From positions 8,184,001 to 8,248,000 of the forward strand of contig NC_047077.1 of assembly GCF_902459465.1 (NCBI RefSeq): DNA of 64,000 nucleotides, read 5' to 3'. Positions within the stretch are counted from its first letter, which is position 1. The number at the start of each line of letters is the position of its first letter. Below are positions 3,901-62,895 of the stretch, piece after piece. Both the position numbers and the translations under genes were made by a program. The stretch is from Asterias rubens. Taxonomy: Eukaryota. Below the pieces are notes generated by a model. The model made no database searches, was not told where the DNA came from, and worked only from the letters and a program-made list of their open reading frames with translations.

Positions 3901-6900
3901 GATTTTGAGAAAAAATTAGTAAAACAATTTCACACAGAAAATGTTTGTCTCATTGAGACAACAATTATTGTAATATGTACAACGGATGTACGGCTACTCC
4001 TAAAAACATTCCTTTGTGATTTTCTTTTTCTTTTTTTTTTCCTCAAAAAATTTGACGACTAATGAAGCTGAAACTTCTAAAGGTGATTTATAATTTGTGA
4101 CCCGCTACGTGAAAATGAGTCAGATGTTGACAATTTCAAGAATTGAGTTATACATGTATGTATGGCTGGAAAGAACACACCAACAGCAGTAGTTTGGTAT
4201 ATGTCTAAGCTTCGGGGTGTATCGCGTTGCTGAGTTACTTCCGTTTGAAATTAGCCAATACATCATTTTTTCTGAAAAACGAATTACAAGTAAAGTGATG
4301 TTTTAAACTACCATTTCGCGCAAAAGGATACAAATTAGACATAAGTATGATCACAAAATTGTTGTTTTCATAGCTTATTGCCTAAAAGCAAGTGTACTAA
4401 AGGTTAACCATGCAAATATATCTTAAAAAGTGTAATATAAAAAAAATGACATCTGACTCACTTTCGCGTAGCGGGTCACATTTTACAAACATCTTCATTC
4501 ACAGTGAGTAGGGATTCAACCCATGGCCAAACACTTGATCTACAAAAGGTAGCAAAACCCTTTAAGCAAATGCCTGACCTACATTGTGCAGTCTTTGGTA
4601 GATTAGCTATTCCATCAAATTTGTTCCCCACTATTTAAGTATGAAGAAGTGCAATGCTTGAAAGCGCTTTGAGACGCCCTTCGGTTGTGTTAAGCACTAT
4701 ATAAAAACTGGGTATTATTTAGCTAACAAAAGTGTTACTTATTTGGTTCTATAGGTACTCGCCTCTACACAATATTAAAGTTCCATATGATGGTGACGTA
4801 CAGTATCCGAGTACGATGCTTCTAACTGGAGACCATGATGACCGGGTCGTTCCTCTACACTCTCTCAAGTACATTGCTAATCTACAGCATATTATGGGAG
4901 CTGTTGGGAAGCAGACCAACCCACTGTTTATACGGGTAGACACTAAATCAGGACATGGCGCTGGCAAGCCGACTGCAAAAGTGGTAAGTCAAGAATAGAA
5001 TCAAAGCAGGCATGATATTTGTAGTAACTTGCAAAGTATCTTTTGGTTATAATGGTTTGTTATTGCTTAGTTTTGTTACTGTTTACAAGATGGCTGATGT
5101 GAGGATAATCATTGATAAATAAAGCTCATTCAACTCAGTAAATAATTGTCTCAACGACTGGTTATAACAATATTTGTCCCTTGAAAAAAGTAGGAACCTT
5201 TTATTGTACAAGGGCTGACCCATATTCACATTTGCATATCGAACAGGATTTTATAGACTTTTCATGCTATTTAAAAAACCACTTTGCTGATCTAAACTAA
5301 GCAAAAACAATATCATGTGAAAGTAAGTGCTTTCCATGCCTACTATTTCACTGAGGCAAATTGCTGTTAATCACTCGGTGCACCCTGGGGTTCATTGCCT
5401 TGGTGCCCTTTGAAATTATCCACTAGAATTAAAATTACCCTCGTAGAAGTGCCCTTTAGCAAGGAACTGCTACCTTGCCCCTAAAGGAATAAAAGATCAG
5501 GCCTGGCTTTCCAGCTCTAATAAAATCTTGAGAATTTACCTGATCAACTTTTGCAAGTGTCATAATCACAGAGTACATTCAATGACCAGTGATTCGTTTA
5601 ATACCTTAAGCAGGGGATTCCATTCAATTCACAGAGTACATTCATTGACCAGTGATTCGTTTAATACCTTAAGCAGGGGATTCCATTCATTGACCAGTGA
5701 TTCGTTTAATACCTTAAGCAGGGGATTCCATTCAATTCACAGAGTACATTCATTGACCAGTGATTCATTTAATACCTTAAGCAGGGGATTCCATTCATTG
5801 ACCAGTGATTCGTTTAATACCTTAAGCAGGGGATTCCATTCATTGACCAGTGATTCGTTTAATACCTTAAGCAGGGGATTCCATTCAATTCACAGAGTAC
5901 ATTCATTGACCAGTGATTCATTTAATACCTTAAGCAGGGGATTCCATTCATTGACCAGTGATTCGTTTAATACCTTAAGCAGGGGATTCCATTCATTGAC
6001 CAGTGATTCGTTTAATACCTTAAGCAGGGGATTCCATTCAATTCACAGAGTACATTCATTGACCAGTGATTCATTTAATACCTTAAGCAGGGGATTCCAT
6101 TCATTGACCAGTGATTCATTTAATACCTTAAGCAGGGGATTCCATTCATTGACCAGTGATTCGTTTAATACCTTAAGCAGGGGATTCCATTCAATTCACA
6201 GAGTACATTCATTGACCAGTGATTCGTTTAATACCTTAAGCAGGGGATTCCATTCAATTCACAGAGTACATTCATTGACCAGTGATTCGTTTAATACCTT
6301 AAGCAGGGGATTCCATTCAATTCACAGAGTACATTCATTGACCAGTGATTCGTTTAATACCTTAAGCAGGGGATTCCATTCAATGACCAGTGATTCGTTT
6401 AATACCTTAAGCAGGGGATTCCATTCAATTCAAGTCAACATTTATCTCATACTACTCTTCTCAAGATATAACGTATACAAAATATTACAAAGATAAGCAA
6501 AATAATAAGCACAGAGGATGTAGAGAAAATAGTTAATCTATGTCAACCAAAATAAAGAGAATATGAGGCTGTCAGATAAACCCAAGGCTTGTAAAAGACA
6601 GCCTCTCTAGACTTCAATCAAGGAGACAAGACATACATGTACAGGGAACAAGAAGAAGAAGAAAAAACCAGACCGGTTGCTATGAGAGAAATATGTATAA
6701 ACAGGCAGGGCTAAAGCAAATGGCTGATGACCTAATGTACATGTAGGAGCTGGACTGACTATTAAAGAGAATGATACCAGAATGATGCAGATTTCATGTT
6801 TCTTGAGTGGATTATTTTCCTTTATGAAATCTGACATTGTGTTTAACATGTTCTTCTCTTCCAGATTGAGGAATACTCCGATATCTATGCATTCATCGCA

Positions 6901-11351: not shown

Positions 11352-14300
11352 ATGAAGAGTTCATTGCACCATTTACCAACATTCAGAATGCCCATTATAA
11401 TCCTCCTCATCGTAATTGCAAGTCCATCGCATGTTTTGACACAAACTACACCATCTTCACTGGATTCATCCTCAACCGTTGGAACAACTACGGTAGATAC
11501 GGGAACTGTCGGCTTGCTGACAACCACGAACCCACCTCAGACAACATTAGATACGGGAACTGTCGGCTTGCTGACAACCACGAACCCACCTCAGACAACA
11601 TTAGCCCGACCACCTGACTGGCCTGAGCAAGAAAAACCTGGTGAGTGTTGAAAGTCTTTCACCTTGGTAATTGTCAAAGACCAGTATTCTCACTACATGG
11701 CGAGTCAAAAAGAGGTTGACCAAGATTTATGATTTAAAAACAAAACAACAACTGACACTCAAAACCCCAGTGAAGCGCATAACAAGCATTCTATCCCGCT
11801 TATCTGAAAAACAAGTTAAGCAAATTGATCATTTGTAAGAGAAGTTATGCCAGTTTTACTGAAAGCACTCAACTAAACAATCAATAGTCGTGACTCGGAC
11901 ACTAGTAGTCGCAGTAGTCGACCACAGGATTAGCATATGTGCATAATTTTGAGAACAGGCATAGAGTAGCATCAGGAGGTAAGAACTCTTCTTCTCGGAA
12001 AGACAAACAGATTATTGTCTTTCTTGTTTTTGGCACTAAGGAATAATGCATTTTTCTGGAATGTTTTCATTTCAGTTACAAAACTGGAGCTTGCTGGCAC
12101 AACGGTGGAACTATGTACCCATCGACACCTATGCAGTAGTCTTGGTTGCCACTTTCAGCCATTTGAAGATTTCGATCGTACTGGGGCTGCTCCTCTCTGC
12201 CAGTGTGATCCAGATTGTGTCTTCTTTAATGACTGCTGTCAAGACTACAAGGAAAGTTGTGAACATGTAACAGATGATGATCAAGGGACTGACTCCAGGC
12301 TTAGGAAACTCAAGGTAATACAATTTTTCAATTTTGTTAGACTAATGGTAGTTTTCACCATGTCTTCTTAAATCATCATCATCATCTTCTTATAGACAGA
12401 TAGACCTTATGCACATATCAGTAGGGCACCCTCACCTTGAGGTGAAAAAGCGGCCATTCATTGGCCAAACCTGTGCGCCGTGCGTACAAATTTGTGCATT
12501 TTGAATGTTTCGTCAGCGCTTTACCTGTAAGATGGTGACTGGATGGCGTGAATGCATAAGGTCGATACTGTGCAGAAACTTCCTCCGCCCTGGAGTATAC
12601 TTGCACATTGGTTGAAGTACAGACAAAACTCAAGGCATAAACAAATATCAGTATTGTGTGCAAGTAAAAGCCTCTAGCTACCGGGCAACCGCGGTAGTCT
12701 AGTTGGTAAGACACTGCTCTAGAATTGCAAGGGTCGTGGGTTCGAATCCCACCCGAGTAACATGCCTGTGATATTTTTTCACAGGACTCGGGAAAGTACT
12801 GAGTATACAGTGCTAACACACATCGGTGTATGGGTAAAAACCAAATTAATATTCTTTATCCCCGATGCAAATTTAACATCTATTACAAGTAAAAGCAGTT
12901 TCTTATTTTAGCATTTTGTGTTGGGATTGGTAATTAGCTGAAGGTGACCCCTTTTAGCCTGCTCTTGAGGACATCCAGAGTTGGTGACTCAACAACTTGC
13001 TTGGGCAGTGATTTCCACAGGTGGATGGTATCGAGGAAGAAGCAGCCTTTCAGTAAGTTGGATGGAACATGAAATTTCATGTTGTTTCCTAGTGAATACT
13101 CACCATGATTTTGCTTTGTTTGTTTTTCAGCTTGAAGATTTAACCTGCTACCCTGGCAATACAAAGAAGGGTTACTATGCAATAGCGTCTTGTCCAGAGG
13201 AACGCCAATCAGTGTCTGATGAAATGCTGTTTCTTTGTGAAAACGTTGACAGCAACGATTTGTTGTCGACCATTCTTGTCTCTGGAGTGAAGTATAACCT
13301 CCCGTACAGGAATGTTTACTGCGCCCTCTGCCATGGGGAAGACTTAGTCGACTTAACATCTTGGTCTCTTGATGTAGATTGTTTTGGGGAGCATACAACC
13401 AAAGAAGCTCTGGGGCTACTATCAAACTCTACTTCATCTGAAACTCTTGATTATTTACAGAATACCCTGGATTGCACTGTTCAACCCAAACCTCAAGACC
13501 CGACCTTAAACATCCTCAGAGCTTGTTTCATTGTCTTTTTTGAATCCTGCCCTGCAGGTCATCCACTTAGTGAAGCTTGCGAATCATACACAGCTTTCGT
13601 CCACACAGCATTATTATTCGATTATCTTGAGAGCAAAAATCCACATTGTGTTGCCTGCAACAACGATGTTGAAAATGCTACAGAATGTGAAAGTTTCTAC
13701 CCTTACATTCCACTGAAAGGCGTAACTCCTCAACCTGGCCTTGGAGGACCACCTATTGGTGGTGTACCACCCATTTCAATTGTCTTGGACTTCCGATCTG
13801 GGGGCAATGTTAAACTCTTGAGGGAAGAGACGGTTGTTGTTGAAGAACAGGTTGCATGCTCAACCAATGAAGTCTATGATCCATTCCGTACAATATGTCG
13901 AAAGTTGTCTTGCTCCTTTGGGTATGAGTTAGTTGGAAATGAGTGTGTCTTAAAGTCCGAGCATGATGATGATGGCATTGTGGTTTACATACATGTCACA
14001 GTTTGCACTTCTGAGCCTCTTGGTTATGCCTCTGAAGAAGCTGTCAGAAACTGCCTGCAAGAGCTGATAAAAGTCAACCAAAGTAAGCTTGAGGAATCAA
14101 TTATTATTCCACTTGGAACACCAATGGCGACTTGTTTCCAAAATGAGCAACAAACGACTCATCCTTATATGGTCCAGACAGACAGAAAAACCTTCCAGGA
14201 GTTTCATGTCAATCTTCAAGAGCCAAGAGGCGTGAAATTTTGCCAAACCCAAATTGATGCAATGAAGATTGTTGCTATGGAAGTAATTCACCATACAGCA

Positions 14301-16331
14301 AATCTTGCTGTTGGTAAATGCAATGGGCGATGGATTACAGAAGCCCAATTCCACACGGATGGGTCAGGTTTAGTGTACATAAATGAATCCGACTCTTGGT
14401 ATGCAGCCAACCAAACGCTACAACGAGAGGTTTTCATCCATGAGGAGCTATCCAGCGACTTGAAGCAATCTGGCAGTCTTCAGCTTTGCCTCAATCCTGA
14501 TCTGTCCTGCTTATTAGAGACACTCAACAGTTCCTTATTTCTCCACGATGATCTGAACAATATTCTTACATACATTCCAACCGGGGAAATGTACAGTCGA
14601 GACCAATACATAGAGACATGGAGTGGACAAATCCAAGTTTGTTCCTTCAATGACCGGAATGGAACTCGAAACACAACTAGAATCATAACCTTCTTTGAAT
14701 ACTCTCAACCTCAGCAGATTCTTAGTCTAATCCTTAACATCATATCAATGCTTGCTGCTCTAATTACCTTTATAACCTACTGTGTCTTTAAGGAGCTTAG
14801 AAACCACACAGGTTATCTGATAATGAACTTTGTTGGCACTCTCTTTATGGCACAACTATTTCTCTTATTCAGTGGAGTGGCCACAATTTATCCATCAGTC
14901 TGCACTAGTGTCGCTGTTTTAGCCCACTACCTTCTGTTGGTCAACGTGATGTGGACTGGACTTTTGGCATTCGACCTCCACCAGACGTTTGCAACACGAT
15001 CAAAAGTTCGACAGAGCAAACATGGTAGCATACCTAAGGCAGCAGTGTCAATTGCTTGGGGTACCCCTATTCTAATCATCCTTCCCTGCTTGATCTTACA
15101 CCTCTGTGACTGCACTGAGATCCCGCTGTGGTATGGTGATGAGAACATCTGCTGGATCGGGAACGGTTACGTCAACATTGCTGTAGTTGGAGGTCCAATT
15201 GGGGTCGTCATATCAGCCAATGTCATCTTGTTTGCTTTTACTATCCATGGGATATGGAGGACAAACAGAGACACGATTACAGTACGGAAGAATAAATCTC
15301 TGGTCCAGCAGACAAAGGAGGAGTTGATCATATACCTGAAAGTAAGTACAATGCACTATTTACACGTATTCTGCCTAGCTTTATTCACATACTTCCAGAA
15401 AAGACATCTAAAAGCCTGCTACACAGACCACAGGCTTATATGATTCCTTTTCGAAAGGGCAAGGGCACCAAGGTATTTTCCCCTTGGTAAAGAGCAACCT
15501 TTGAGAAAATTGTAAATTTCTACTGGTGCATTTCAAGGGCACCAAAGGCAAAGACCAGGGGTATGGAGGCAAACAAAAGGGATATCTGTGGGGAAAAGGA
15601 GAAGGCGCAGGCAAAATGTTGTTAGTCATGTGCTTAAAGACACTGGACACCTTTGGTAATTTTCTAAGATCAGTCTACTCACTTGGTGTATCTCAACATT
15701 ATGCACAAAATAACAAACCTGTGAAAATTTGAACTCAATTGGTCATCGAAGTTGCCAGATAATAATAGAAGAAAAAACACCCTTGTCACACGATGTTGTG
15801 TGCTTTTAGATGCTTAAATTTCCGGACCTCAAATTCTAATTCTGAGGTCTCGTAATCAAATTCAAATATTTTAGTGGAAAATTACTTCTCAAAATCTACA
15901 TTACTTCATAGGGAGCCGTTTCTCACAATGTTTTATACTATCGCTATTGATCGCTAACAAGTAAGTTTTTATGCTAACAATTATTTTGAGCAATTACCAA
16001 TAGTGTCTAGTGCCTTTAAACGTTCAGACCATTGTTTTCAATCGAACAGATCTCCAGTCTGATGGGTTTCACTTGGATCATTGGCTTTACAGCAGCTTTC
16101 ACTGATGTGATTTTACTCTGGTACATCTACATCATTCTCAACTCTTGCCAAGGTCTTCTGGTCTTTCTCTCCTTCGTCTGTAAGATCAGCATCTGGAGAC
16201 GGTGGAAGAAGACCTTTGCCTCGAGATGTTGTCGACGAGAGGACCACCAAGCTCACAGTTCAAACATGTCTCAAGGATCTAGTCCTTCGAGACCAACAGT
16301 GTCTGCTGACACCCGCATTACAAGGATTTGA
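11352..16331 (+). CDS. Somatomedin-B-domain, Cys-rich ectodomain, family-B (secretin/Methuselah-like) 7TM receptor, paralog 1 (about 1006 aa)
   Basis: Exons 11352-11640, 12076-12314, 13131-15341, 16050-16331 (phases 1,0,0; total 3021 nt). Hydrophobic signal peptide, Thr-rich stalk, SMB motif CQCDPDCVFFNDCCQDYKESC, YRNVYCALCH and KNPHCVAC motifs, seven hydrophobic segments with family-B-like TM6/TM7 LMGFTWIIGF and YIILNSCQGLLVFL. Confidence 0.9.
12400..12566. mobile_element. Small MITE with atagaccttatgca TIRs
   Basis: Second copy at 58198-58370. Confidence 0.75.
12672..12886 (+). mobile_element. tRNA-derived SINE-like repeat (family T1)
   Basis: A-box TAGTCTAGTTGG at 12695-12706, B-box GGTTCGAATCC at 12739-12749, paired D and T arms, broken anticodon arm, shared 3' body in four copies. 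Confidence 0.8.
15638..16015. mobile_element. Kolobok-like MITE K1 in receptor paralog 1 intron 3
   Basis: TTAA at 15634-15637 and 16016-16019; ends about 30 nt before the exon 4 acceptor. Confidence 0.85.
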
Positions 16332-17016
16332 GTGTTAGAATATTAAAGTATATTTGAAGATTTTAAACAGGGTTACCTTTGATTTAATGAATTTGTTCAT
16401 CTTGAATATTCTATAATAGCTGTAAATATAAGTGTGGCACAACCAATTGTATAGTATTCAAGCATGGTTCAAGTTAATTGCCTTTCCTGTTAACATTTCC
16501 TCCTTTTAAGGGGCTTAAACAGCTTAAAAGCTGTTTTATAGCACCCATGTAGTTTGCTATTTTCTTAGAAGTCTTTGTAACTGTTTTACTCTGGTCTATT
16601 TAGCTGTGTTTTAGTTTTGATTGTTAGTTATTTCTTGGTTTAGGTTTCACTTAGTTTGAAACGAATTCAACTTAAGATTTAGATCCCAAGTTCATTCATT
16701 TTGATCTTGATGGTTTTTATTGTTTGGTACTGCTTTTGGTGACTGATTTATAATCAATAAATTTGTTTGTTCTTTTTTTGTTTGAGAAACCTACAACTTT
16801 GAGTCACTGTTCCTATTTTTGCATTTCTTCGCGTCTTAGCCCTATTATATCTAGTTTTTAATTAATTTTTCTTGAGTGAGTTCCCCCACAGCATTCAGTT
16901 TTATTTGGTTCATTCAAGTGGTGCATTTTTCCCGGTTACATTTGTATTCTCATGACAATGATTTATACACCTATAGATGAGTATGTCACTTTTAAAAGTT
17001 TACTGTTATTGCTTAA

Positions 17017-17403
17017 AGACACTGGACACTATAGGCAAATGCCAAAGACCAGTCTTCTCACTTGGTGTATCTCAACATATATATGCATAAAATAAAAAAA
17101 CTGAAAATTGGAGCTCAATTGGTCGTCCAAGTTGCGAGATAATAATGAAAGAAAAAATACCCTTGTCACACAAGGTTGTGTGCTTTCAGATGCTTGATTT
17201 TGAGACCTCAAATTCTAAATCTGAGGTCTCGAAATAAAATCCGTGGAAAGTTACTTCTTTCTTGAAAACTATGTCACTTCAGAGGGAGCCGTTTCTCGCA
17301 ATGTTTTATACCATCAACCTCTCCCCATTACTTGTTACCAAGTCCCAAGTAAGGTTTTATGCTAATAATTATTTTGAGTAATTACCAATAGTGTCCACTG
17401 CCT
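17017..17403. mobile_element. Kolobok-like MITE K1
   Basis: TTAA at 17013-17016 and 17404-17407. Confidence 0.85.
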
Positions 17404-18901
17404 TTAATAAGGGCAACAGTATTGTTGAGACTACATTTTGTTAGCACACTGGACCAGTGTTACAACCACTCGGTGAAATCTTACTTTTCCATTACATTTT
17501 GCAATTTCCTTGTAGAAATTGAATAGTCCAGATTTTCACCCCATGATTATTGCAAGAATGCACACATTTGAATCCAATATTTGTATATCACAAAACACAA
17601 CATTTGAAGAAGTTTAATGTGTTATGTATGTAGGGCAATCAGCCAGGACTGACCAAGTTTTTAAGGGATACGCATGGCAAGTTATGCAGGTGGTTATTCA
17701 CACAAACATCATGTTTTTAAAATCTTGCTTCATTTGTGTGATTTAATGGGCTTATTGTGTAGAGGTTTCAATCGATTGTGTGATAGTATAAGACAAACCA
17801 GACTTTGTTTTGCTCTCGGCTGTTGACATCCTACCTACAAGTGGTATTCAGAATCTAGGACTTAATATTACAGATTGGAAGTTCATGCATCAGTGAGCAG
17901 TTAGATCTACCGCCAGGTAATTCTGTAAAATAGTAAAACCTGTATTAAGAGGGCTGATGCACACTCGCTGCGTTTTCACTGCGTATATGCAGTGCCCGTT
18001 TATAAAAGTCTGCAGTCCGTAAACAGAAGCGCAGTGCGTTATCATGTTGCGCATATACGTACACATTTTTTTCAAAATGAATAGGTCGTACACAAAAATC
18101 AGATACGTAGGCGGACGAATTTAATAAAAACAAAATATATGGGGGATGCGTACTATGTATACGTAATGTCAGTGAAAAGAAAATTTAAAAATCTGTTTAA
18201 CACAAGTTTGAACGAATACTGAGATGTTCAGAGGGCAGTGACTTCATGGAAGGGAAATTCGGGAAATCTGCGATAAAGATATGGACAGAAGGCAAAGATA
18301 CCAATTAATTTATAAAAAGATCCTTGCACCGCACGAATGTATGAACACAAATTGACGTGTGTGTTTCCGCATCTGACAGTGAAACACTTTGTAGTCTGTT
18401 AAATGCTTTATTAGTTGTATTTTTAAACTTGCAATTGTTTGTAATTGGCTATATAGCAATTTAAAAAATTCATTTCCATGTTCATCTTTTGAATTAGTCA
18501 AGTTTGGTCGAAGAAAATCTTTAAATAAAGGAGAGTTTTCTCTAGATGGTTCTGATTTGTATAACAACAATGCTGGGTTCTACCTATAGTACATTAATTT
18601 GTAACGTTAATTTGGGGTCAACATTAAGTGTTTGTAAGAATGGCGGATTCTGAAACTTCTGAAAAGTTGGTCTTACCAAGTTTGTAGAAGAATGTGCTCC
18701 TTGCATCCTCTTGATTTTACCCTGTTAACAGTTTGGCCTGGACTTCAAAAGGCCATTGACTCTGTTGCCCTGGTTTTGGTCTTGATCCCCCTTCAAAACT
18801 TCCCAAACATTTTCCAATAGACGTGCCCTTTGCAAAATAAAAATTGACCTTACCCTTTCAAAGATCATGCCTGGTATCTTCCGAGTGCAGAGAGTCGACT
18901 A

Positions 18902-21900
18902 ATGATGGGAATGTTCTACTCGGCAAGTTGGTGTGTTATGGTGATGGTGGTACATGTATGCCCACAGTACACACTAGCACAAACTACACCTCCACAGCCC
19001 CCTTCTATGCCCGTTTCTACCTCTGGAGGGGTATCAATGGGTACAACAGGAGTTACCCAGTCTCCTTCATCTGAATCCTTCTCAACATCACCTGTTGTAA
19101 ATGAGAATGTCATCGGTGAGCTTATAATTTTCAATTAATAGTCAATAAGCCATGCGTGAGTTAGATTTGAATAATCTCAATGACTTGCTTAGTCTCAATG
19201 TTACACGTACATTTGAATTCCTAAGACTATAGAGACAGTTGCTTTGTCAAATGGTTCGGGATAAGCATTTGTATAGCAACCTCCAGATGAGCGAACCCTG
19301 GTACCATTGTTCCATACACATCCATTCAGAATTGTGTACGGATCGATGTTCACCGTCTCTGATGTGACTACTCTAAAGCTTGCCCCTTATCTTGTGACAT
19401 ATAGCAACGGTCTCGATAGTCTGAGGAATTCAAATTTAAGTGGTAACTTGTGATCAAGGACGTCTTTGTACCAGACGATATTAAAATCTAACACGCAAAT
19501 GGCTTATTGTGCTATTATTTGTTCATACAAATTTGCATACATACTTTAAAAAAAATAGATTTTTTATAATTATGTATTAATGCTTTTATTGATGTTTGTC
19601 TTAATTGCTTTGAAAAACTCAGTTGTTGTCATTAAAAATATTACTTACAAAATCAACATCAACCACTTTAAAGTGTTTGGGTAATATTTTTTCTGACGGT
19701 TAAAAAACACAAACACATACGGGATTTTAAGATAATGATGGTAGAAAGCTTCCCTTAAAATATTACTTTCTGATGAGGTGCTGTAGTTTTTGAGAAATAT
19801 GGGAAAAACAATTCAGCGAGACGAAAACTATTTTAACATGTACGCGACTCTCCTGAAAACATTGCTCTGAGATTTACACTTTTTTTCCTCAAAAACTTGA
19901 CCACTAGTGAAGCTTAAAAACTTCTACAGGTAAATTAAAATACATGTATCCTCGTTGACAGTGAGTAGGGATTTATGTCATGGCCAAACACTTGGCCTAC
20001 AAAAGTTATCAAGACCCTTTAATGAAGGGATTTCAAGAAACAATGCCAAAAATACACAATTTTTTTTGAAGTATCCCAGGAATAACATTGAATCACTTTT
20101 TAGAAACCATGTAATTTTTGAAGAGTAATGAATATTCACCATCCGTAGATCTTGACTCTGTTACGGAACTGGAGCTTGCTGGAGTTCTGATGGACCTATG
20201 TACCCATCGACACCTATGCAGAAGTCTTGGTTGTCACTTTCAGCCGTTTGAAGATTTCAATCGCACTTGGGCTGCTCCTCTCTGCCAGTGTGATCCAGAT
20301 TGTGTCTTCTTTAATGACTGCTGTCAAGACTACAAAGAAAGTTGTGAACCATGGACTGTTAGTGAAGATTTGTCTTCTTATTTGACTGGCTTGAAGGTAT
20401 ATATATGTACCATGTCATGATATGTTGCACAGGGTGTGTCCCCAAGACCCCCCCCCCCCCAATCCAATCCAATGCTCACCTACATGTACGTTAACCAGAC
20501 GCAACATTCTAATTGCAAACAAAGAGGAAACGGCCGATCACACTTAAAGGAACACGTTGCCTTGGATCCGACGAGTTGGTCTATAAAAAGCGTTTGTAAC
20601 CGTTTGTTATAAAATGCATAATGGTTGGAAAGATGTTGTAAAAGTAGAATACAATGATCCACACAAACATGCCTCGAAGTTGCACGGTTTCCTTTTACCT
20701 CGTCGACTAACACGGTCGGCCATTTATGGGAGACAAATTTTGTACTCTTATAAATGGCCGACCGTGTTAGTTCGCAGAGTAAAAGGAAAACCACGCAATT
20801 TCGAGGCAAGTTTGTGTGGATCATTGTATTTTACTTTTAAAACATCTTTCCTACCATATGCATTTTATAACAAATGGTTACAAATGCTTTTTATAGACCA
20901 ACTCGTACGATCCAAGGCAAAAATTAATAACGTTTTCCTTTAACTTTTGACAGCGTTTTTCAGTTTTCTATGGCACTGAGTTGAAAGAAAAAGAGGAAAT
21001 CAGCTGATCAGCTGAAAAGTTGCATGAGAGGGAAAGAGTTTCCTTATATTCAGGGACATTTTCAAATTTGTTCATCAGAACCAGGAGAATGTTTCTTTCC
21101 AGGGTCTGCAGAATCCTGGAGAGTTTGCAGCTCTGCATATTCAGAACACAAAGTGCTGGTAGGGGCTTAAAGATTGCCTGTTAATTAAACAGTTTATGAG
21201 AAGAACAGTACCTGCATTTATGTCTCCAACCATGTCCTCCCTAAGGTCATGGAGGTGTGATAGACCATGTAGCCCATATCCCTGCTGCATGATACGTGTC
21301 CTCCCTAAGGTCATGGAGGTGTGATAGACCATGTAGCCCATATCCCTGCTGCATGATACTTGGCTATTGGAAATAAAAGTATGACATTTTAATTGAGTAC
21401 AAGAGCTGACCTACATGTACGGTATAGGCTTTTATAGACTTTAGGTCAGGCTATCTATTAAAATAATTGCCGATTCTTCTGAGAGACAAACAATCGGAAA
21501 GCAGACTTAAAGCCAGTATACACTTTCGGAAAAGAAAAAAGAAAAAAAGTTCACAGATTTACAAATAACTTACAGGGTTTACAGAAGGTAATGGTGAAAG
21601 ACTTCTCTTGAAATATTATTTCATGAAATGCTTTACTTTTTGAGAAAAACGTTAAAACAATTATCAATTTTCGATAACGAGAATTACGGATTTATGTAAA
21701 ACACATGTCATGACATGGCGAAATGTGCGGAAACAAGTGTGGGTTTTCTTGTTATTTTCTCCCGACTCCAATGACCGATTGAGCCTAAATTTTCACAGGT
21801 TTGTTGGTCGATACTGTGTACCGAAAGTGTCCAATGGCTTTAAGTAGGAAGAATATCAATACCAATGCTGCATATTTTTATTTTTTTTATTTTTTTTTAT

Positions 21901-24900
21901 CCAACATCCAACAGCGCAAGTGCCAATTACAGGACGGATGAAAATATTAAAGCAAAAATATATTGAAATGTCCTAACTGTAGCCAATATCACACCCTACA
22001 TCTATTTCTAGTTCCTAACTCAGCGTATAAAACCTACAACTGTTCCAACAATGGGTACAGCGAAAGCTGCACATCATGTTCGCTTGAAGATAATGTTATA
22101 AACACGGCTTAATAGGGCATTTACAGTGGGTCAAAATGTCCTTGCCAATAATCAAAATACCCTTGCCAATAATCAAAATACCTTCGCAGAACTGTGCTAG
22201 TTCAAGCAAACACAATTCATTGCAAATGCAAATTTCTTTACAACTTAATTTCAACATCATGTTTTCCCCAATCGCTAATAAAAATGAAAGTCTCAACAAG
22301 TCATTATTCTGAATAAAATATGTTGGTCAATCTTTTTCAGCTTGGTGATACAATTACCTGTTATCATGAAGAAACCAGAATTCCACTGGAAGTTAAGAAG
22401 GGCTACTACATTATAGCCACTTGCCCCAATGAAGGTCCGGTGCATAATGAACAGACTCAGTCTCTATGTGAGCACATTGACAGCGAGGATTTGTTGTCGA
22501 CCATTCTTGTCTCTGGAGTGAAGTATAACCTTCCCTATAGGAATGTATACTGCGCCCTCTGCCATGGGGAAGACTTAGTCAACGTGGATGCGTGGCCTTT
22601 GAACATAGAATGTGAATTTCAGGACATATCTGATGAAGCTCTGAATCTCCTGTCCAACTCTACCTCCAATGCCACTTTGAGTTACATTCGAAATACTCTG
22701 GGATGTATTGTTCAACCGAAACCTCCATACCTGACCTCGACAATCCTCAGGGCTTGCTTTCTCAACGTTTATGAGTCCTGCCCAGAAGGCCATGGACTTG
22801 CTGAAGCCTGCGCTTCATACACAGCCTTCGTTCTCATTCCTTTACTGTTCCTTCAAAGTAAGAACCCACACTGTGCTTCATGTCAGATCAACCAATCACT
22901 GTTTATACACTGTGCCGAGTATTACCCCATCCTCCTGCCAGTCCTGTTCACACCTTACGACCCGCCGGGACCACCCAATGATTCAGGAATTCCACCCATC
23001 TCAATTGTCCTGGATTTCCGATCTGGAGGCAATGTCAAGCTTATTAGGCAACGAGAGGTAGTTTTTGAAGAACAGGTGGCTTGCCTTCCCAATGAGGTGT
23101 TTAATCCGTTCCTCAAAACATGTCGAAAATTGTCTTGTCTTATAGGATATGTTCTGAAAGAGAACGAATGCATCAAAAGCGTCACGCCTACAATTCACAT
23201 TGATCAGGACATTGTGATTTATATCCACATCACGTCATGCTCATCAGAAACCAAGAAGGGTACTCAAAAGGCTGTTAAAAGCTGCCTCGCCGGGCTGTTG
23301 GATGATAATGATCAAAGTCTGTTTGAGCAATCAGTTATTGTCCCGGAAACGATCCAAGCAAACTGTTCCCATGGTAAGCAACAGAAGTCCTCTAACGCAT
23401 TCATGATTCAATCAACCTTGGAAACATTTATGAACTTTCGTCAGAAAATAGGAGTGGTTGAAGGATTGTTTTGCCCATACTTGCCCATACAGATTATTGC
23501 CTTTGAAATCATTTATCATGGAGTTAACTTATCTCTCAGTAAATGCAATGGGCGATGGATGAGTGAAACCCAGTTCCACACGGATGGGTCAGGTTTAGTG
23601 TACATAAATGAATCCGACTCGTGGTATGCAGCCAACCAAACGCTACAACGAGAGGTTTTCATCCATGAGGAGCTATCCAGCGACTTGAAGCAATCTGGTA
23701 GTCTTCAGCTTTGCCTCAATCCTGATCTGTCCTGCTTATTAGAGACACTCAACAGTTCCTTATTTCTCCACGATGATCTAAACAATATTCTTACATACAT
23801 TCCAACCGGGGAAATGTACAGTCGAGACCAATACATAGAGACATGGAGTGGACAAATCCAAGTTTGTTCCTTTAATGAGCGGAATGGAACTCGAAACACA
23901 ACTAGAATCATAACCTTCTTTGAATACTCTCAACCTCAGCAGATTCTTAGTCTAATCCTTAACATCATATCAATGCTTGCTGCTCTAATTACCTTTATAA
24001 CCTACTGTGTCTTTAAGGAGCTTAGAAACCACACAGGTTATCTGATAATGAACTTTGTTGGCACTCTCTTTATGGCACAACTGTTCCTTTTGTTCAGTGG
24101 AGTAGCGACCCTTCATCCAACAGTCTGCACTACTGTTGCCGTTTTAGCCCACTACCTTCTGTTGGTCAACGTCTTGTGGACTGGTGTCCTAGCATTCAAT
24201 TTCTATCGAACATTTACCAACCATTTAATCACATCCCGCAACACTAACAGCAATAGTTCCATGGCATCTATGGCATTTGCCTGGGGTATTCCCATTCTGA
24301 TCATCCTTCCCTGCTTGATCCTACACCTTTGCGACTGCACCGACGTCCCGCTGTGGTACGGCAATGAGAATGTCTGTTGGATAGGGAATGAATACAACAA
24401 CATCGCTGTTGTTGGAGTTCCAACTGGGGTTGTTATTTGTGCCAACGTCATTTTGTTTTCCTTCACTGTCCACGGGATCCGCAAAACAAACAAGACAACA
24501 AAATTGGTTCATAATACCTCTACAATGCAACAAGTGAAAAAGGAACTCATCATTTACATTAAGGTTAGTTTTCAAGTAATTTGCTTCTTTTTTTTATGTC
24601 GGAACAAATCGGTCTTACACTAGTTGCGATGATCGCATCACTACATCCTCCCAACAGTTATAGACCACTCATCGCAACTCGCTTTACACATATGTTTCAT
24701 TTGGAGTGGTCAGGGGTTTGTTAAGGTTTTGTTATTGCAATGGTATGGATTCTGTAACAATACCACATTAATTGTGTGCATTTCACACAAAAACATGCTC
24801 AAAAGCGCATGACAATAAGATACAATCCTAAAAAGTCAGCACATAAAGTACTGCAGAGTAACTGCAACAACTTAAATAGCCGAAATTTGTTTTATAAGAA

Positions 24901-25458
24901 ATACCTTACAAACAATAACAGACCAATTGAATAAGCAGGTCCATTACAAAGCGTCAGTACAGCTTGAATAAATGACTTTTCCCCCCATTGGATTTTTGCA
25001 TCTTTTGACTACGTTAAAACATTCTCTGAACTGAACAATTGATGTATGAATATTATCTTACCCGAGTCTTCTGGCTGATGTCTGAGATCCAAAGTATCAG
25101 AGTTGGGTAGAAAGACACCAATACACGAACCTGACTAAACAATGACTCCATCTATTCAATCCACTAGATCTCCAGTCTGATGGGTTTCAGCTGGATCATT
25201 GGCTTTGCAGCAGCTTTCACTGATGTGATTTTACTCTGGTATATCTTCATCATTCTCAACTCTTGTCAAGGTCTTCTGGTCTTTCTCTCCTTCGTCTGTA
25301 AGATCAGCATCTGGAGACGCTGGAAGACTTTCATCTCGTCGTGTCATCATCGCTGTCATCGGGAGAATGAAGATCCTGCCAGTGATCGTATTGGCATTGC
25401 GGTGGATGTTCATTTAAAACCAGAAACAACAGCTAAGACTTGTACCACTGGCATTTGA
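18902..25458 (+). CDS. Somatomedin-B-domain family-B-like 7TM receptor, paralog 2 (about 991 aa)
   Basis: Exons 18902-19115, 20149-20396, 22341-24563, 25168-25458 (phases 1,0,0; total 2976 nt); same exon layout and motifs as paralog 1. Confidence 0.9.
19672..20018. mobile_element. TTAA-type MITE K3
   Basis: TTAA flanks at 19668-19671 and 20019-20022; similar to 3776-4564. Confidence 0.7.
20548..20939. mobile_element. Kolobok-like fully palindromic MITE family K2
   Basis: TTAA flanks; arms fold around ...atttatgggag / ...ataaatggccgacc; other copies 27852-28223, 37010-37225 (partial), 52381-52762, 52933-53304. Confidence 0.85.
21511..21839. mobile_element. TTAA-type MITE (family K4)
   Basis: TTAA-agccagtatacactttcgg ... 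ccgaaagtgtccaatggct-TTAA. Confidence 0.75.
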
Positions 25459-48682: not shown

Positions 48683-51143
48683 TACTTTACAAAGGCAACA
48701 AAGGCCGATACTTCACAAAGGGAACTCAGGCAATTGCCTCGGTTGCCCCATGTCATTGCCTTGGTGCCTCTATAGTTTCCTCATAGAGGTGCCCTTATAT
48801 ACCAAGGAGAAATCACATTGGTGCTGGCTTGGTTAACGTCTAATGTTGTGAATCCAGTTAACAACAAGCATGACCTCAACTCTGCCTCATGCTGACTACA
48901 ATGTGATGATATTCTATGCTTATAAATACAACTTAATTTGCCAGTCCTTACAAATGAGAAAGTAGCCTGAAAAATGGTAAGATATTCTTGTCAGTATAAG
49001 TAGTGAATCATTTCCCCAAAATAGACTTGAAGGAATTCCCTTCAAATAAGGCCTGATGGTTAAATACAATCTCTTTTCAAAAACCAATATCGTTTACAAA
49101 TTTTACATCGACACAAAACTTGGCAATAATTATGTGATATATTTTAAATCATTCCTGCGTAATGGGAGTTATCCGTGATTATTACTTTCTTTCATCTAAT
49201 TTAATTTCTTTCAATTACGTGTATACCAAACATTTCATTTTTTTCTTCTTTTGTAATAATTTCTAAGAAAGTACACTGCAATAAAATATAGGGTTAGCAA
49301 TAACGCATCATTGAGAGAAATAATTTCTTTTGAGTTGGGAGAAAAATTCACTTATCGTTCTAGTTCTTTCGAGTGACGTTTTAGAATCCAGTCACGAAGT
49401 GGCCATTTGAGTGGGTTCCTGGCTGTCCCCCCTGACACCCCCATGCCAGTGGAATCAGTTGTAGGGGTTTTGCTCTTTACGCTTTTAGCGTCTACCCCTG
49501 AAGGAACGGTTGGCTTGTTGTTTAGCTTGTCCACTAGCTCATTCTCTAAACCATATTTGATATGGAATAGGGATGCTTTAAATATTGAACTAGCCAGCAG
49601 TACCCCTTTTGGGTCAACTAAGACTCGTCCTCAAAGATTTTAACTAACATGACTTCAGTTAAAGGAGAACGCTGGTTTAAGCCCAAGACTGTATAGTACC
49701 GAAAATCACAGATGGCCACTTTTGACAAAAGGATTCATGGAATTTCAGTTTTTTTTTTGTAGGGATTTCCAAAGTTGTATTTTCACCACTTTTGACCCCA
49801 AAATACAAAAGTGAATCTTTGGATAGAAATATTTACAATGGTTTCAGAAAACAAAATACATCTACAGTATACAAGAGCAGCGAGACCAACCAATTGCTCA
49901 TGATTATTCATGATTTAATCAAAGTATGTCAGCCAATGACAGTGTAGTTTTCATGGGTAATTTACATATTATAATTATAATTGATCAAAAGTTAGAATTC
50001 AATATTTAAATTAATCACTGAATTGAATTGGGACACAAGATTTTGCTCACCTTTAATTATTTTCTCTCAGTGATGAGAATATTCTTTTAGAGGAAGGTGT
50101 CTTTTTAAGGACGCCATGTGTTTTGAGAATAAAAATAGATACATATTTGTGGACAACATTGAGTGGCTTTTAAAGCCAGGTACTAAAGCCAGGTACTACA
50201 TGTACATGTATAGCCGCCGTTATCAAACTTTGTTTGGAAGCAGTGTGTTTTGAAAAACCTCATCAAACAAAAATTTCTCGATTGATTTATTTTTCAGGAG
50301 GAGTTGTGATTCAAGTAGATCAATGCTGGTCGAAATTTGAACTTACAAAGTATTTGTTTCCAGCTGAATAGACCATGGAAACACAGCCAGCCGTAAAAAA
50401 AACGTGTCATCAACTACTCCCTAGCCGACAGAAATGATCAGTCCACCCCGGGCAGACGTTAAAAAAAGCAAAACTCTTTGGCAAATTCAATTAGGAAGGC
50501 TTCAAGAATAAAACAATTAAAGAAGAAATATGACTGAAGCATTAAGCACGTTTTCTTTTGAAGAGAGTGTCGAGTGAAACTCAAAATCCGACTGCCTTAC
50601 AAGCATTGACAGCCGTGAAGCTTTCTTTACAAACAATTACCTGTGATTTGGATTTCCATTATAAATATATGCCATCTCTTGCATAACATGTCTGCTCATA
50701 CGTCGACTAAAAGTCTCCATTGGATCTCTGGCCGTCCAAAAGTTAACCTCGGAATACTTCAAGTTGCAAACTCAACAGCGACTCTAAGAGTCACCATGTG
50801 ACTGAATTACTACAATGAGTTGACGGACATACATACACTAATCAAAATAAACGCTTGCAACTTTTCGTCTTTGTCTTTTGTTTGCAACTGGAAGTGTTCA
50901 ACTACTTAACAATTAGATCATTCAACAACATGGGACTTTTCACTCTCATAGGAATTACCATATCAATGGAAGTTTCCCTGCTGGTAGGTTTTCCCACTTC
51001 CAGGACAACTTCCATGGACAAGGTAATTCCCTTATCAATGACAACTTTTCCTTTTTTTAAGTATTAAATTAAGGAAATCCATTCTACATGATCACATTGC
51101 CTTACATCTCTCCCGCAAACGGCTATCTACACAGCTTCCCACA

Positions 51144-60300: not shown

Positions 60301-62543
60301 ACCAGAACCACTTCCAGGTATTTTTTACTCCTTTATCAATGGCTTTAATTTGGCCAGGTACCACTCGGTCCCGCTCTAAAAAATCATTTCTTTTGGATGT
60401 CATTTTGACGGACGTTTGAAGATACGACTGTACACACATAGCACACAGTATACATGTACATTTAGCAACTAACTCACACACATACATGTACATGTACAAC
60501 ACGTGTATACTATACTATTGCAAAACAGCGGGACCAGACGAAGACACGACCTTAGACTCATTTCAAGGCTGTATAATAACTTTGTTTAGCACACAACTCG
60601 CCTGCGCCACGGGTGCGTTCCACTGTTCCAGATTTTTCGACCGTACACACGGCTATTAGTGACCACACGCAGTGTGTAAACGTACGCTTTGCTTGCTGTG
60701 GGCTTTAGATTGACCCTGCAGTAGAATGGATTGCGTGCCGCGGCAGAGGCCAGACCATGCGTTACAATGTATTGTTGAATTTATCTTTAGATCGCGCTAA
60801 CCGCGGAATGTATTTTGGATATTTTTTTAGCGCTAATCATTTGTCTTATGATCGCGCTAACCGCGGAATGTATTTTTTTGCGCTAATAATTTTTTTGAAA
60901 ACGCGGAATTCCGCGTTTCCGCGGAAGAGTTGCATGCCTGATAAATTGCGATATAAAAACTGATTTTTATTATCTTACCTCCTTTTCCTTGTCCTCCTCT
61001 CCCATACCAGTTTTCGTCCTTGTTACTTCTGTCTTCTGCCTTCATACAATAAATCGTTCTGCCCTCAATTGGATGTTTTTCCATAACTGATGAGAAAGAA
61101 AAAGGTTTTGTTTTGTTAAATCTCTGCCACTTGTAGTTTATAAGATTTAATCTCATGGCACACGCAGGCCTGGAATTTCATCTTTGAGAGGGCAAGGTCA
61201 TTTCCATTCTTAAAAGGGCACCTCAATTGGACAATCTTTAAGTCTTTGGGAATTTTTAGAAGGGGCACCAAAGGCTTTTAGGGGGTTTGTTTAAGCGCTT
61301 TGTTGGGTATTTTAGTGGAATTTTTTTCATGGGGGGGGGGGGGTGTGTGTGGCTCCATGAATGAGGCAAGCACTCACTTGCAATCTTGTCAACGGCGTGA
61401 GTGTCTTCGAGTTCAACAAAGCCGAATCCCTTGCTCTTGTTGTCTGCAGCTCTGTCTTTGATGACCTTTACTGATTTGACCGTGGCAAATTTGCTGAAAT
61501 ATTCTCGCAGCTGGTCCTCTGTGATTACTGTGCCCAGGTTTTTGACGAAGAGTTGGTTTGTTGGATCCGGAGGGATGTTTGACTGTGAAGGACGAAAAGA
61601 ACAAAATTAGCGCTGTATTGCCATCAACATGATTTAAAAATTCACTTTCAAGTACAAAACCAATGGGGAAGTTGAATAAAAAACAATAGGAGTAGGCCTG
61701 GCATTTCATCTTTGAGAGGGCCAGGCCATTTTCATGTCTTTGGGAAACTGCAGATGGGGGCACAAAGGCTGGGACCAGGGCAACAGAGGCAAAATTTCAT
61801 GTCCTGCTAACAATGGAATGTTACACCACAAACATAAACAAATTGAAAACTCTTTGGTTGCTAAGCTTTCAGAGCAAGATCCACCTATTTGTAATCGTTT
61901 GGTTATTTATTTCCTATCTAAATGGATAAAACTAACATGTGAAACTTCCATTTTGAAAGGGTGGTAGGTAGTGTTTTTGAAATATTGCGGACAAGTTGAG
62001 GCGGTAATGTCCACACAGGAAGATCCGTAATTTATAAACAAAATCTGAGAAACTTTTCATGAGGATCTGATGCTCAGATTGAAAATGCTTTTAAATCACT
62101 CTCTTTGAAACCACATTCATTTGTTTCTCAAAATAAAGCACATAATTAACAGTTGCAGTGCTCCTAACAAAAGTTAGTTTCTGTAGTCGAATTTGTTTTG
62201 AGTAATAATGAAAGGTATGTACAAGATACCCTCCCTTTAACGCAAATATTTCAGCTTTTTCTAGCCGGATTTTAAGACTTACATCTTTTGGAATAGCTCT
62301 CTTAACCTCCACTTTCTTGCTGTTGATTTCATGGGGTCCACCCTCGTTCTCATGAATGGCCAAGTCTGTCTCTTCTATGGTTGCCATAGTAACAAAGCCA
62401 AAGCCTTTTGATTCTTTGTTGGAGTTGCAGATGACGACGCAGTCCTTGACGGTGCCGAATTCTTGGAAGTGTTCCATTAAATCCTTGACAGTAGTAGCTC
62501 GGTTGAGACCTCCGAGAAAGATCTTCCGGAGATTCTCAGGCTC
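54391..62543 (-). CDS. hnRNP A1/A2-like RNA-binding protein, paralog B; first coding exon not identified
   Basis: Exons 62543-62283 (EPENLRKIFLGGL...KGFGFVTM...VEVKRAIPKD), 61582-61378 (LFVKNL, KGFGFVEL, AVDKIA), 61086-60979, 58660-58598, 58003-57947, 54617-54391 (Gly-rich, ends GHYKNY*). All AG/GT bounded, phases 0,1,1,1,1. Confidence 0.88.
55084..55548. mobile_element. Two adjacent small palindromic MITE-like elements (55084-55264; 55338-55476 with duplicated right arm to 55548)
   Basis: Long inverted arms visible in both. Confidence 0.7.
55600..55883. mobile_element. MITE with atagacctttctat TIRs
   Basis: 14-bp inverted ends. Confidence 0.65.
55897..56153. mobile_element. Short hAT-like element with CAGGCATGCAACT TIRs and 6-bp TSD
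   Basis: TAAGAA at 55891-55896 and 56154-56159. Confidence 0.85.
56309..57808. mobile_element. 1.5-kb non-autonomous DNA transposon with GTAACGTCCGTCGAT TIRs and 6-bp TSD
   Basis: 15-bp TIRs, TATCTC at 56303-56308 and 57809-57814, clustered TCGATA subterminal motifs at both ends. Confidence 0.7.
58692..58862. repeat. Long imperfect palindrome (MITE core) centred on cgaggcggagccgag
   Basis: About 75-bp inverted arms. Confidence 0.7.
59745..60940 (-). mobile_element. Internally deleted hAT-like transposon, same TIR family as 55897-56153, 6-bp TSD
   Basis: CAGGCATGCAACT ... AGTTGCATGCCTG; ATAAAT at 59739-59744 and 60941-60946; repeated cgcggaat subterminal motifs. Confidence 0.85.
60116..60403 (-). 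pseudogene. Frameshifted N-terminal transposase exon with BED-like zinc finger
   Basis: MTSKRND...KNTWKWFWLE...RKVDKPGMAYCVMCKT, then after a frameshift at about 60209 GKREQVALTEHCKAAKHRQLIKLRKTNYCFPG followed by a GT donor; CxxC...HxxxxxH pattern. Confidence 0.7.
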
Positions 62544-62719
62544 CTGGAGAAAAGAATGACAAAAGCATTTACAATGTATGATAGTTAGGTGTGGAACGTA
62601 TTTACCTAAAATAACACCAGTGAAATCAGATTTTGAATTGTCCGAAACATTTACCAAAGTAGATTTGGACTTGGATATTCTCAATGCTCTTACTACTTTT
62701 AAAGCCAAATGAGAAGGGA

Positions 62720-62895
62720 GAAGATAGGAAATTTCAGTTTTAGATGTGGGAAGGAAAAAAAACATAGAATATTTCAGGGAAACCCACGCAGTCTAGAAGG
62801 GACTGAAAACCCAATCCACATAGTACCCCCAGAGGAATTCGAACCAGGGTCCTAGAGATGGAAGGCGAGGCACGATACCACTACACCAACCTAAC
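62720..62895 (-). mobile_element. tRNA(Gly)-derived SINE (family T3)
   Basis: ggtgtagtggtatcgtgcctcgccTTCCAtctct...GGTTCGAATTCC head, body ending cccacatctaaaactgaa; decayed copy at about 3315-3385. Confidence 0.7.

Follow-up and report, generated by a model that had tools for sequence, protein, structure and literature searches.

A 64,000-nucleotide stretch of the genome of the starfish Asterias rubens (NCBI RefSeq assembly GCF_902459465.1, contig NC_047077.1, positions 8,184,001 to 8,248,000; hereafter the window, in whose own numbering coordinates are given) carries two tandem receptor genes on the forward strand, referred to here as gene A and gene B. With a probability of roughly three in four, we consider these genes to be tandem paralogues in a DUF8401-bearing, GAIN-less branch of the class-B2 receptors, the branch represented by the non-arthropod Mth/Mthl, NvX and PARF1-type proteins, and to signal in the manner proposed below. 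An initial annotation of the window had singled out the pair as an unusual and undescribed architecture, and this part of its account did not hold, as the ectodomain is the Pfam family DUF8401 (PF28443, Pfam 38.1), the same layout extends from Nematostella and Trichoplax to arthropods, and the architecture figures in published surveys. The pair are ordinary members of a widespread and already catalogued receptor family, not an undescribed system.

The gene models, built from the sequence alone in a window with zero N letters, each comprise four exons joined by canonical GT-AG introns and predict products of 1006 amino acids (AA) for gene A and 991 AA for gene B. Gene A corresponds to RefSeq LOC117301085, and its product matches XP_033640858.1 from Met13 on; gene B corresponds to LOC117301086, with a match to XP_033640859.1 from the second methionine on. 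Both products are labelled "uncharacterized protein" in RefSeq. From the N- to the C-terminus each gene encodes a signal peptide, a stalk rich in serine and threonine, a Somatomedin-B (SMB) domain with nine cysteines, a cysteine-rich ectodomain of about 520 residues and a complete 7tm_2 domain of seven transmembrane helices (7TM), an order that the initial annotation had read correctly, with the ectodomain put at about 500 AA. In gene A the signal peptide and stalk are encoded by exon 1 (11352..11640), the SMB domain by exon 2 (12076..12314), the ectodomain domains D1 to D4 and the transmembrane helices (TM) from TM1 to about TM6 by exon 3 (13131..15341, of which 14718..15341 is the first part of the 7tm_2 match, stopping at the exon end), and the last helices (to about 16163), the cytoplasmic tail and the stop codon by exon 4 (16050..16331). 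Gene B has the same plan, with a signal peptide and a stalk rich in serine, threonine and proline in exon 1 (18902..19115), the SMB domain in exon 2 (20149..20396), D1 to D4 (DUF8401) and TM1 to about TM6 in exon 3 (22341..24563, with 7tm_2 from about 23943), and the last helices (to about 25281), tail and stop codon in exon 4 (25168..25458).

The SMB and 7tm_2 assignments were borne out in both genes. Somatomedin_B (PF01033) scored 29.4 bits in exon 2 of gene A and 30.9 bits in that of gene B, against a gathering cut-off of 23.1, and 7tm_2 spanned exons 3 and 4 at E values of 1e-17 to 1e-22, covering profile positions 6-250 of 250. The core C-x-C-x3-C-x5-CC-x6-C was visible in both SMB domains together with one additional N-terminal cysteine relative to the Pfam core; in gene A the nine cysteines fall within residues 110-158. 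The motifs YRNVYCALCH, KNPHC and PPISIVLDF, quoted at the outset as two CxxC modules and a linker, were each found in gene A and gene B. The stalk of gene A also holds a perfect 54-bp tandem duplication (2.1 copies, 11494-11604) that adds 18 AA (DTGTVGLLTTTNPPQTTL), the unit being single copy in the A. amurensis orthologue of gene A.

The DUF8401 assignment comes from precomputed Pfam annotation, which places the family on the gene B product (PF00002, PF01033 and PF28443), on the A. amurensis orthologue of gene A and on all of the relatives found. A search of 1.8 billion representatives yielded 327 relatives, 56 of which were aligned for conservation and modelling, and an AlphaFold2 model of the ectodomain (gene A exon-3 residues 1-520) was based on this 56-sequence alignment. 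Compared with AlphaFold DB, the model matched clusters at E values of 1e-7 to 8e-17 under names such as "SMB domain-containing", "receptor Mth2", "MTH" and "Mth-like 1", Nematostella A7SFI6 being among the matches. Judged by accession prefix, the organisms are presumably corals, Nematostella (A7SFI6), Trichoplax (B3RZM3), the molluscs mussel, oyster, limpet and octopus, the arachnids (spiders, mites and ticks), a copepod, a cockroach, a rotifer and a bryozoan. The ESM-Atlas clusters carried 7tm_2 in 98-100%, DUF8401 in 92-94% and Somatomedin_B in 16-24%, with arthropods the most frequent, and DUF8401 thus occurs in combination with both of the other domains of the starfish pair. Overall, DUF8401 joined to 7tm_2, with or without SMB, was found in cnidarians, placozoans, molluscs, annelids, arthropods, rotifers and echinoderms. 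The named relatives that span all four ectodomain domains by sequence were all echinoderms (starfish, brittle star, sea urchins and sea cucumber).

Within the A. rubens genome itself we counted at least 17 DUF8401-type loci, each with the same long single exon and mostly clustered on the chromosome of the window. At least 15 of these are further loci, lying on that chromosome at about 7.70-7.87, 12.56-12.59, 12.82-12.84 and 13.47 Mb and also on contigs C23, C28, C19, C12 and C8, and their open frames run to 700-1100 AA without internal stops. No characterised one-to-one orthologue was found among the named relatives, which are called "uncharacterized protein" apart from one automatically named ADGRL3, in agreement with the original statement that no characterised ligand or function was known for this architecture. 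The exception is a sea-cucumber protein, KAJ8047328.1 of Holothuria leucospilota, whose source record labels it "Adhesion G protein-coupled receptor L3"; since the protein matches the DUF8401 ectodomain (query 56-511), this label seems to be an automatic mis-annotation.

Receptors of this kind have been met several times in genome surveys. SMB domains were noted in an expansion of adhesion-like receptors in amphioxus (Nordstrom 2008, PMC2246102), and the planarian PARF1 receptors have one SMB domain and homology with Methuselah (Zamanian 2011, PMC3261222), as does the Nematostella NvX cluster according to the account of Nordstrom 2009 given in PMC3261222. Both NvX and PARF1, which are known from genome surveys only, resemble the starfish pair in their adhesion-like 7TM, single SMB domain and reported Methuselah homology, a likeness by description. 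De Mendoza, Jones and Friedrich (2016, PMC4768249) used 7TM phylogeny to define an "ancient metazoan Mth/Mthl family" with sea-urchin expansions, SMB domains in Nematostella, amphioxus and acorn-worm members, and 51 members whose ectodomain lacks any known domain. In their account Methuselah_N is arthropod-derived and not needed for the wider family, and vertebrates are without Mth/Mthl receptors (PMC4768249). The best fly matches of the motif-bearing proteins from sea urchin, acorn worm, amphioxus, oyster and Nematostella are Mthl10, Mthl11 and Mthl15, and Strongylocentrotus purpuratus XP_011660493 stands in the Mth/Mthl tables with Mthl11 as its best fly match at 7e-13 (PMC4768249).

In the supplement of that study, XP_011660493 shows the SMB domain, NVYCAxCN, NPHC and the juxtamembrane motifs of the starfish pair, and ...VLAFDLH... 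in TM3. The likeness is shared by S. kowalevskii XP_006818657, B. belcheri 069800F and C. gigas 10006654, all four sequences having the SMB core, NVYCAxCN, NPHC, a hydrophobic-DF linker, VYDP...CRxLSC, a juxtamembrane ...VCS(F/Y) and AFD in TM3. N. vectensis XP_001628572, another non-arthropod Mth/Mthl protein with a GAIN-less 7tm_2 domain, likewise has NVYCAxCN, NPHC, the linker, the hairpin module and the juxtamembrane motif. Because the PMC4768249 sequences show the same hallmarks, we conclude that the architecture has already been filed under Mth/Mthl with its ectodomain unanalysed. Unlike the present account, that study recorded "no known domain" for the ectodomain and described no anatomy, and the starfish pair lies outside its set. 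Pfam DUF8401 is itself a domain of unknown function, without structure or ligand.

The initial description of the pair as GAIN-less, with no GPS before TM1, was borne out by profile, motif and fold searches alike. Among five family members, no Pfam match to GAIN, GPS or hormone-receptor (HRM) domains was obtained at E<=10. A profile of the 56 ectodomains gave no match in PDB, a profile of D4 alone likewise gave no GAIN, and no GAIN chain was matched by either the D4 model or the whole-ectodomain model in Foldseek and VIA fold searches. Regular-expression searches of both whole proteins found neither C.C.HL[ST] nor a bare HL[ST], and a motif search found no cleavage motif before TM1, where the sequence reads ...TRIITFFEYSQPQQ. 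Methuselah_N (PF06652) was also absent from profile, motif and fold searches. A cryptic GAIN domain was rejected, as the Pfam, PDB-profile, fold (whole ectodomain and D4) and regular-expression searches were all negative.

For the 7TM, all matches to PDB sequences (23/23) were 7TMs of the ADGR type, the nearest solved structures being ADGRE1, G6, L3 and D1 at E values of 9e-16 to 1e-13, with ADGRE1 the best at 9e-16; secretin-type (B1) receptors were absent from the PDB matches at E<=0.01. In an ESM-Atlas feature search with the 7TM, a VIP-receptor cluster ranked only 35th, and the 7TM was equally close to adhesion-like clusters and to clusters bearing Methuselah_N. Across 73 family members, the class-B disulfide pair linking TM3 and extracellular loop 2 (C195/C278) and the N..QG of TM7 were conserved, as was W279, beside C278, in at least 90% of rows. 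The family-B assignment of an SMB-bearing receptor is therefore correct, with a 7TM nearer to adhesion-type than to secretin-type receptors. Since all GAIN and GPS tests were negative and the 7TM is nearest to the adhesion type, the pair are GAIN-less family-B2 receptors. They resemble ADGRE1, ADGRG6, ADGRL3 and ADGRD1 in their 7TM and their long modular ectodomain, but with neither a GAIN domain nor a GPS motif, and no recognisable Stachel sequence, they lack the self-cleaving module that defines adhesion G protein-coupled receptors (GPCRs). Drosophila Methuselah (1FJR) and Mist/Mthl1 are similar to the pair in having a GAIN-less class-B2 7TM and a β-rich, disulfide-bonded ectodomain set directly on TM1.

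Our modelling divided the ectodomain into four domains and one linker, with a mean predicted local distance difference test (pLDDT) score of 84.5. The first domain, D1 (residues 1-205; gene A 13131..13745, with its gene B counterpart at approximately 22341-22960), is predicted to be an α/β, disulfide-rich unit with pLDDT mostly between 82 and 94 and forms the core of DUF8401. The first half of D1 is homologous to the second (hhalign alignment of the two, probability 95.5%, E 1.5e-8), pointing to an internal duplication of a cysteine-rich module of about 90 AA, each copy of which closes with a short helix N-x-(Y/H)-C-(A/V)-x-C. In gene A these module ends are YRNVYCALCH and KNPHCVAC, the two CxxC modules singled out in the initial annotation; an oyster family member has at least five CxxC modules (supplement, PMC4768249). 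The linker that follows (residues 207-233) is the sole low-confidence stretch of the model and contains PPISIVLDF (gene A 13767..13793), with pLDDT falling to 43-49 at the PISIxxDF motif. Three of the motif residues, P214, S216 and F221, are nevertheless at least 90% conserved among the 56 sequences, and the motif was found in 53/164 representatives.

Beyond the linker, D2 (residues 233-275; gene A 13827..13955) is modelled as a small four-cysteine β-hairpin module (V-x-C...VYDPF...CR-x-LSC-x-GY...C) with strands at residues 233-274, and its cysteines C243, C256, C261 and C272 are invariant in the alignment. D3 (13977..14300) is predicted to be an α/β domain of ferredoxin-like or SEA-like fold; it is the part least conserved between the two genes (38% identity), and structure searches matched it to region 376-506 of Gpr126/ADGRG6, which we take to be the SEA domain of that receptor. 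D4 (residues 396-520; 14316..14690) is modelled as an all-β domain with invariant cysteines that abuts the membrane, its final strand ...NGTRNTTRIITFFEY adjoining TM1, and its top match among solved structures, a weak one, was the Methuselah ectodomain 1FJR (residues 121-186). What is new in this analysis is the predicted ectodomain anatomy, namely a duplicated CxxC module, the PISIxxDF linker, a hairpin module, a SEA-like domain and a Methuselah-like β domain.

SMB domains have a known protein-binding role. Drawing on this role and on the analogy with Methuselah and Mist/Mthl1, we propose that an extracellular protein or peptide partner would bind the disulfide-rich N-terminal modules (SMB and DUF8401) and that the structured D3-D4 stack on TM1 would relay the binding event to the 7TM. 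The 7TM would then activate a heterotrimeric G protein, in the way proposed for fly Methuselah and Mist/Mthl1. Such a receptor would presumably not be autoproteolysed and would have no GAIN-caged Stachel sequence.

Several points weigh against assigning the pair to this branch and this mode of signalling. Because no fly Mth/Mthl sequences appeared in the homologue search, the placement with Mth/Mthl draws on PMC4768249 and on motif identity, not on a 7TM tree of our own. Searches with the gene B 7TM and with the 73-row profile returned only DUF8401 proteins and one fish ADGRF5, with no fly Mth/Mthl among them. The ectodomain model likewise had no Drosophila Mthl match among the Swiss-Prot models, where these proteins are presumably present. 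The steps of ligand binding and signalling are proposed by analogy, and the evidence for transcription covers gene A, not gene B. We know of no ligand, G protein or expressing tissue for the pair, nor, to our knowledge, has a ligand been established by anyone for DUF8401-type or Mth-related receptors outside insects.

The same anatomy may also be viewed as that of a matrix or adhesion sensor, in which SMB would bind an integrin-, uPAR- or PAI-like partner or the matrix itself, and the stalk and the SEA-like domain would make up a mechanical or adhesive sensor with no soluble ligand. The SMB domains of vitronectin and ENPP proteins bind partners of this kind. The presence and conservation of SMB in the pair, the serine- and threonine-rich stalk, the SEA-like fold of D3 (compare mucins, dystroglycan and Gpr126) and a 7TM nearest to those of adhesion GPCRs are all consistent with such a sensor, which we regard as unlikely though a real possibility.

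A second alternative assigns the agonist to the receptor itself. Either the PISIxxDF linker or the strand before TM1 (ITFFEY) might serve as a tethered intramolecular agonist, free of any GAIN domain, that becomes exposed when ligand or force shifts the N-terminal modules. The strong conservation of PISIxxDF within the only unmodelled stretch would suit such a role, as would the last strand before TM1, which is conserved among echinoderms and is predicted to fold only as part of the entire ectodomain, its pLDDT running from 96 to 75 in the full model but reaching just 55 for D4 modelled by itself. However, PISI is separated from TM1 by about 320 residues, there is no likeness to the Stachel consensus (T-x-F-A-x-L-M-like) and no cleavage motif, and the low pLDDT may merely reflect a strand that AlphaFold2 failed to place. 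The idea is purely inferential and we hold it to be decidedly doubtful.

Returning to the pair as DUF8401 receptors of the Mth/Mthl type, we compared the two genes for signs of selection. The initial annotation had described the ectodomain as variable and suggested recognition of matrix, microbes or chemical cues, and such diversifying recognition was not supported: the pairwise ratio of nonsynonymous to synonymous substitution rates (dN/dS) was 0.16-0.6, below 1 in every part, with 0.3 in D1 and D3. Synonymous divergence (dS) was saturated at 1.1-1.5 over most of exon 3 and was reduced in the SMB exon (0.38) and in exon 4 (0.45). Both genes have 1:1 orthologues in A. amurensis with 96-98% identity, and both copies are held by purifying selection. 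Positive selection on the ectodomain thus found no support in the pairwise comparison. In a tree of the unconverted part of the ectodomain, gene A and gene B were sisters (Shimodaira-Hasegawa-like approximate likelihood ratio test support, 92), and the two together were sister to an Acanthaster/Patiria pair. From the saturated dS, the A. amurensis orthologues and this placement, the duplication appears to be old, arising in the Asterias lineage after the split from Acanthaster/Patiria and before that between A. rubens and A. amurensis.

In contrast to this old divergence, one segment of the two genes is nearly identical. A tract at 14349..14857 of gene A (+ strand), with its partner at 23574-24082 in gene B, differs by only 5 mismatches in 509 bp; this tract, which covers D4, TM1 and TM2, is 99% identical where its flanks are 50-75%, and has a dS of 0.037 against 1.1-1.5 outside. 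The A. amurensis paralogues are also alike in this region (157/169 AA, compared with 52% in D1-D3), and the A. rubens pair is more similar (168/169 AA) than are the orthologue pairs (162-163/169). From these two patterns we conclude that the D4-TM1-TM2 segment was homogenised by gene conversion repeatedly, before the species split and again afterwards in A. rubens.

For expression, gene A (5,101 letters) was aligned with two transcriptome-like contig sets and two RNA sequencing read sets. An RNA contig of run X1 joined 15341 to 16050 exactly and with 0 mismatches, and one of run X2, from a sister species (about 2.5% differences), joined exon 2 to exon 3. Read depth was 4-23 in exon bins and almost nil in unique intron bins. 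The spliced contigs and the exon-only depth show that gene A is transcribed, if weakly in these samples, and that its splicing follows the model.

Separately, three stretches within the introns of gene A (11642-11812, 12668-13009 and 15404-16087) reached RNA and contig depths thousands-fold above the exons and contained numerous variant letters, along with chimeric "joints" in the hundreds. Their appearance suggests dispersed high-copy repeats (transposable elements) of a type well represented in starfish transcriptomes. Two minus-strand open reading frames (ORFs) at 12418-12819 and 12934-13425, with no Pfam match, overlap one of these high-depth stretches.

These data bear on whether the genes might be diversifying immune or chemosensory receptors, with a fast-evolving, duplicated ectodomain directed at microbes or environmental cues. 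The tandem arrangement, in a family whose loci number at least 17 and cluster for the most part on one chromosome, and the 38% identity of D3 between the paralogues would be in keeping with that role. Nevertheless, the dN/dS of 0.3 in D1 and D3 and the saturated dS indicate an old and constrained duplicate, the A. amurensis orthologues are 96-98% identical, RNA depth was very low in the runs examined and the family is of modest size, and we find this explanation very doubtful. That the pair might be cryptic self-cleaving adhesion GPCRs with a divergent, undetected GAIN domain, as the ADGR-like 7TM and the ADGRL3 name of the sea-cucumber relative might suggest, is largely refuted by the uniformly negative GAIN searches and hardly credible.

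A broader conjecture, speculative and in our judgement improbable, is that the DUF8401 receptors are an ancient pan-metazoan lineage of orphan GPCRs, extending from Placozoa and Cnidaria to echinoderms and representing the ancestral state of the fly Methuselah ectodomain, with PISIxxDF, in its flexible linker between the ligand-binding modules and the stack of SEA-like and Mth-like domains, acting as a tethered agonist of non-GAIN type or as a docking switch. If true, this would represent a third mode of coupling between ectodomain and 7TM in class B, beside hormone capture (B1) and GAIN/Stachel (B2).

Elsewhere in the window, a 224-AA ORF on the minus strand (62091-62765) has an RRM_1 domain (Pfam, E 2.9e-13) and, going by this match, is probably one exon of a gene for an RNA-binding protein. 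For the ORFs at 5528-6496, 51088-51879 and 54192-54650, Pfam returned nothing but noise below threshold. Those at 5528-6496 and 51088-51879, where the matches were scattered, have overlapping antisense ORFs and probably represent low-complexity or repeat sequence rather than genes.

What is specific to the starfish amounts to nothing beyond a lineage-specific duplication with gene conversion, and the interest of the pair lies chiefly in how its ectodomain is built and in the conserved motif of the linker. Gene A and gene B are two well-supported, annotated but unnamed additions to a receptor family of most invertebrate phyla, and the anatomy of DUF8401, together with the clear absence of GAIN, informs the design of constructs for deorphanisation and for tests of how GAIN-less class-B2 receptors are activated.

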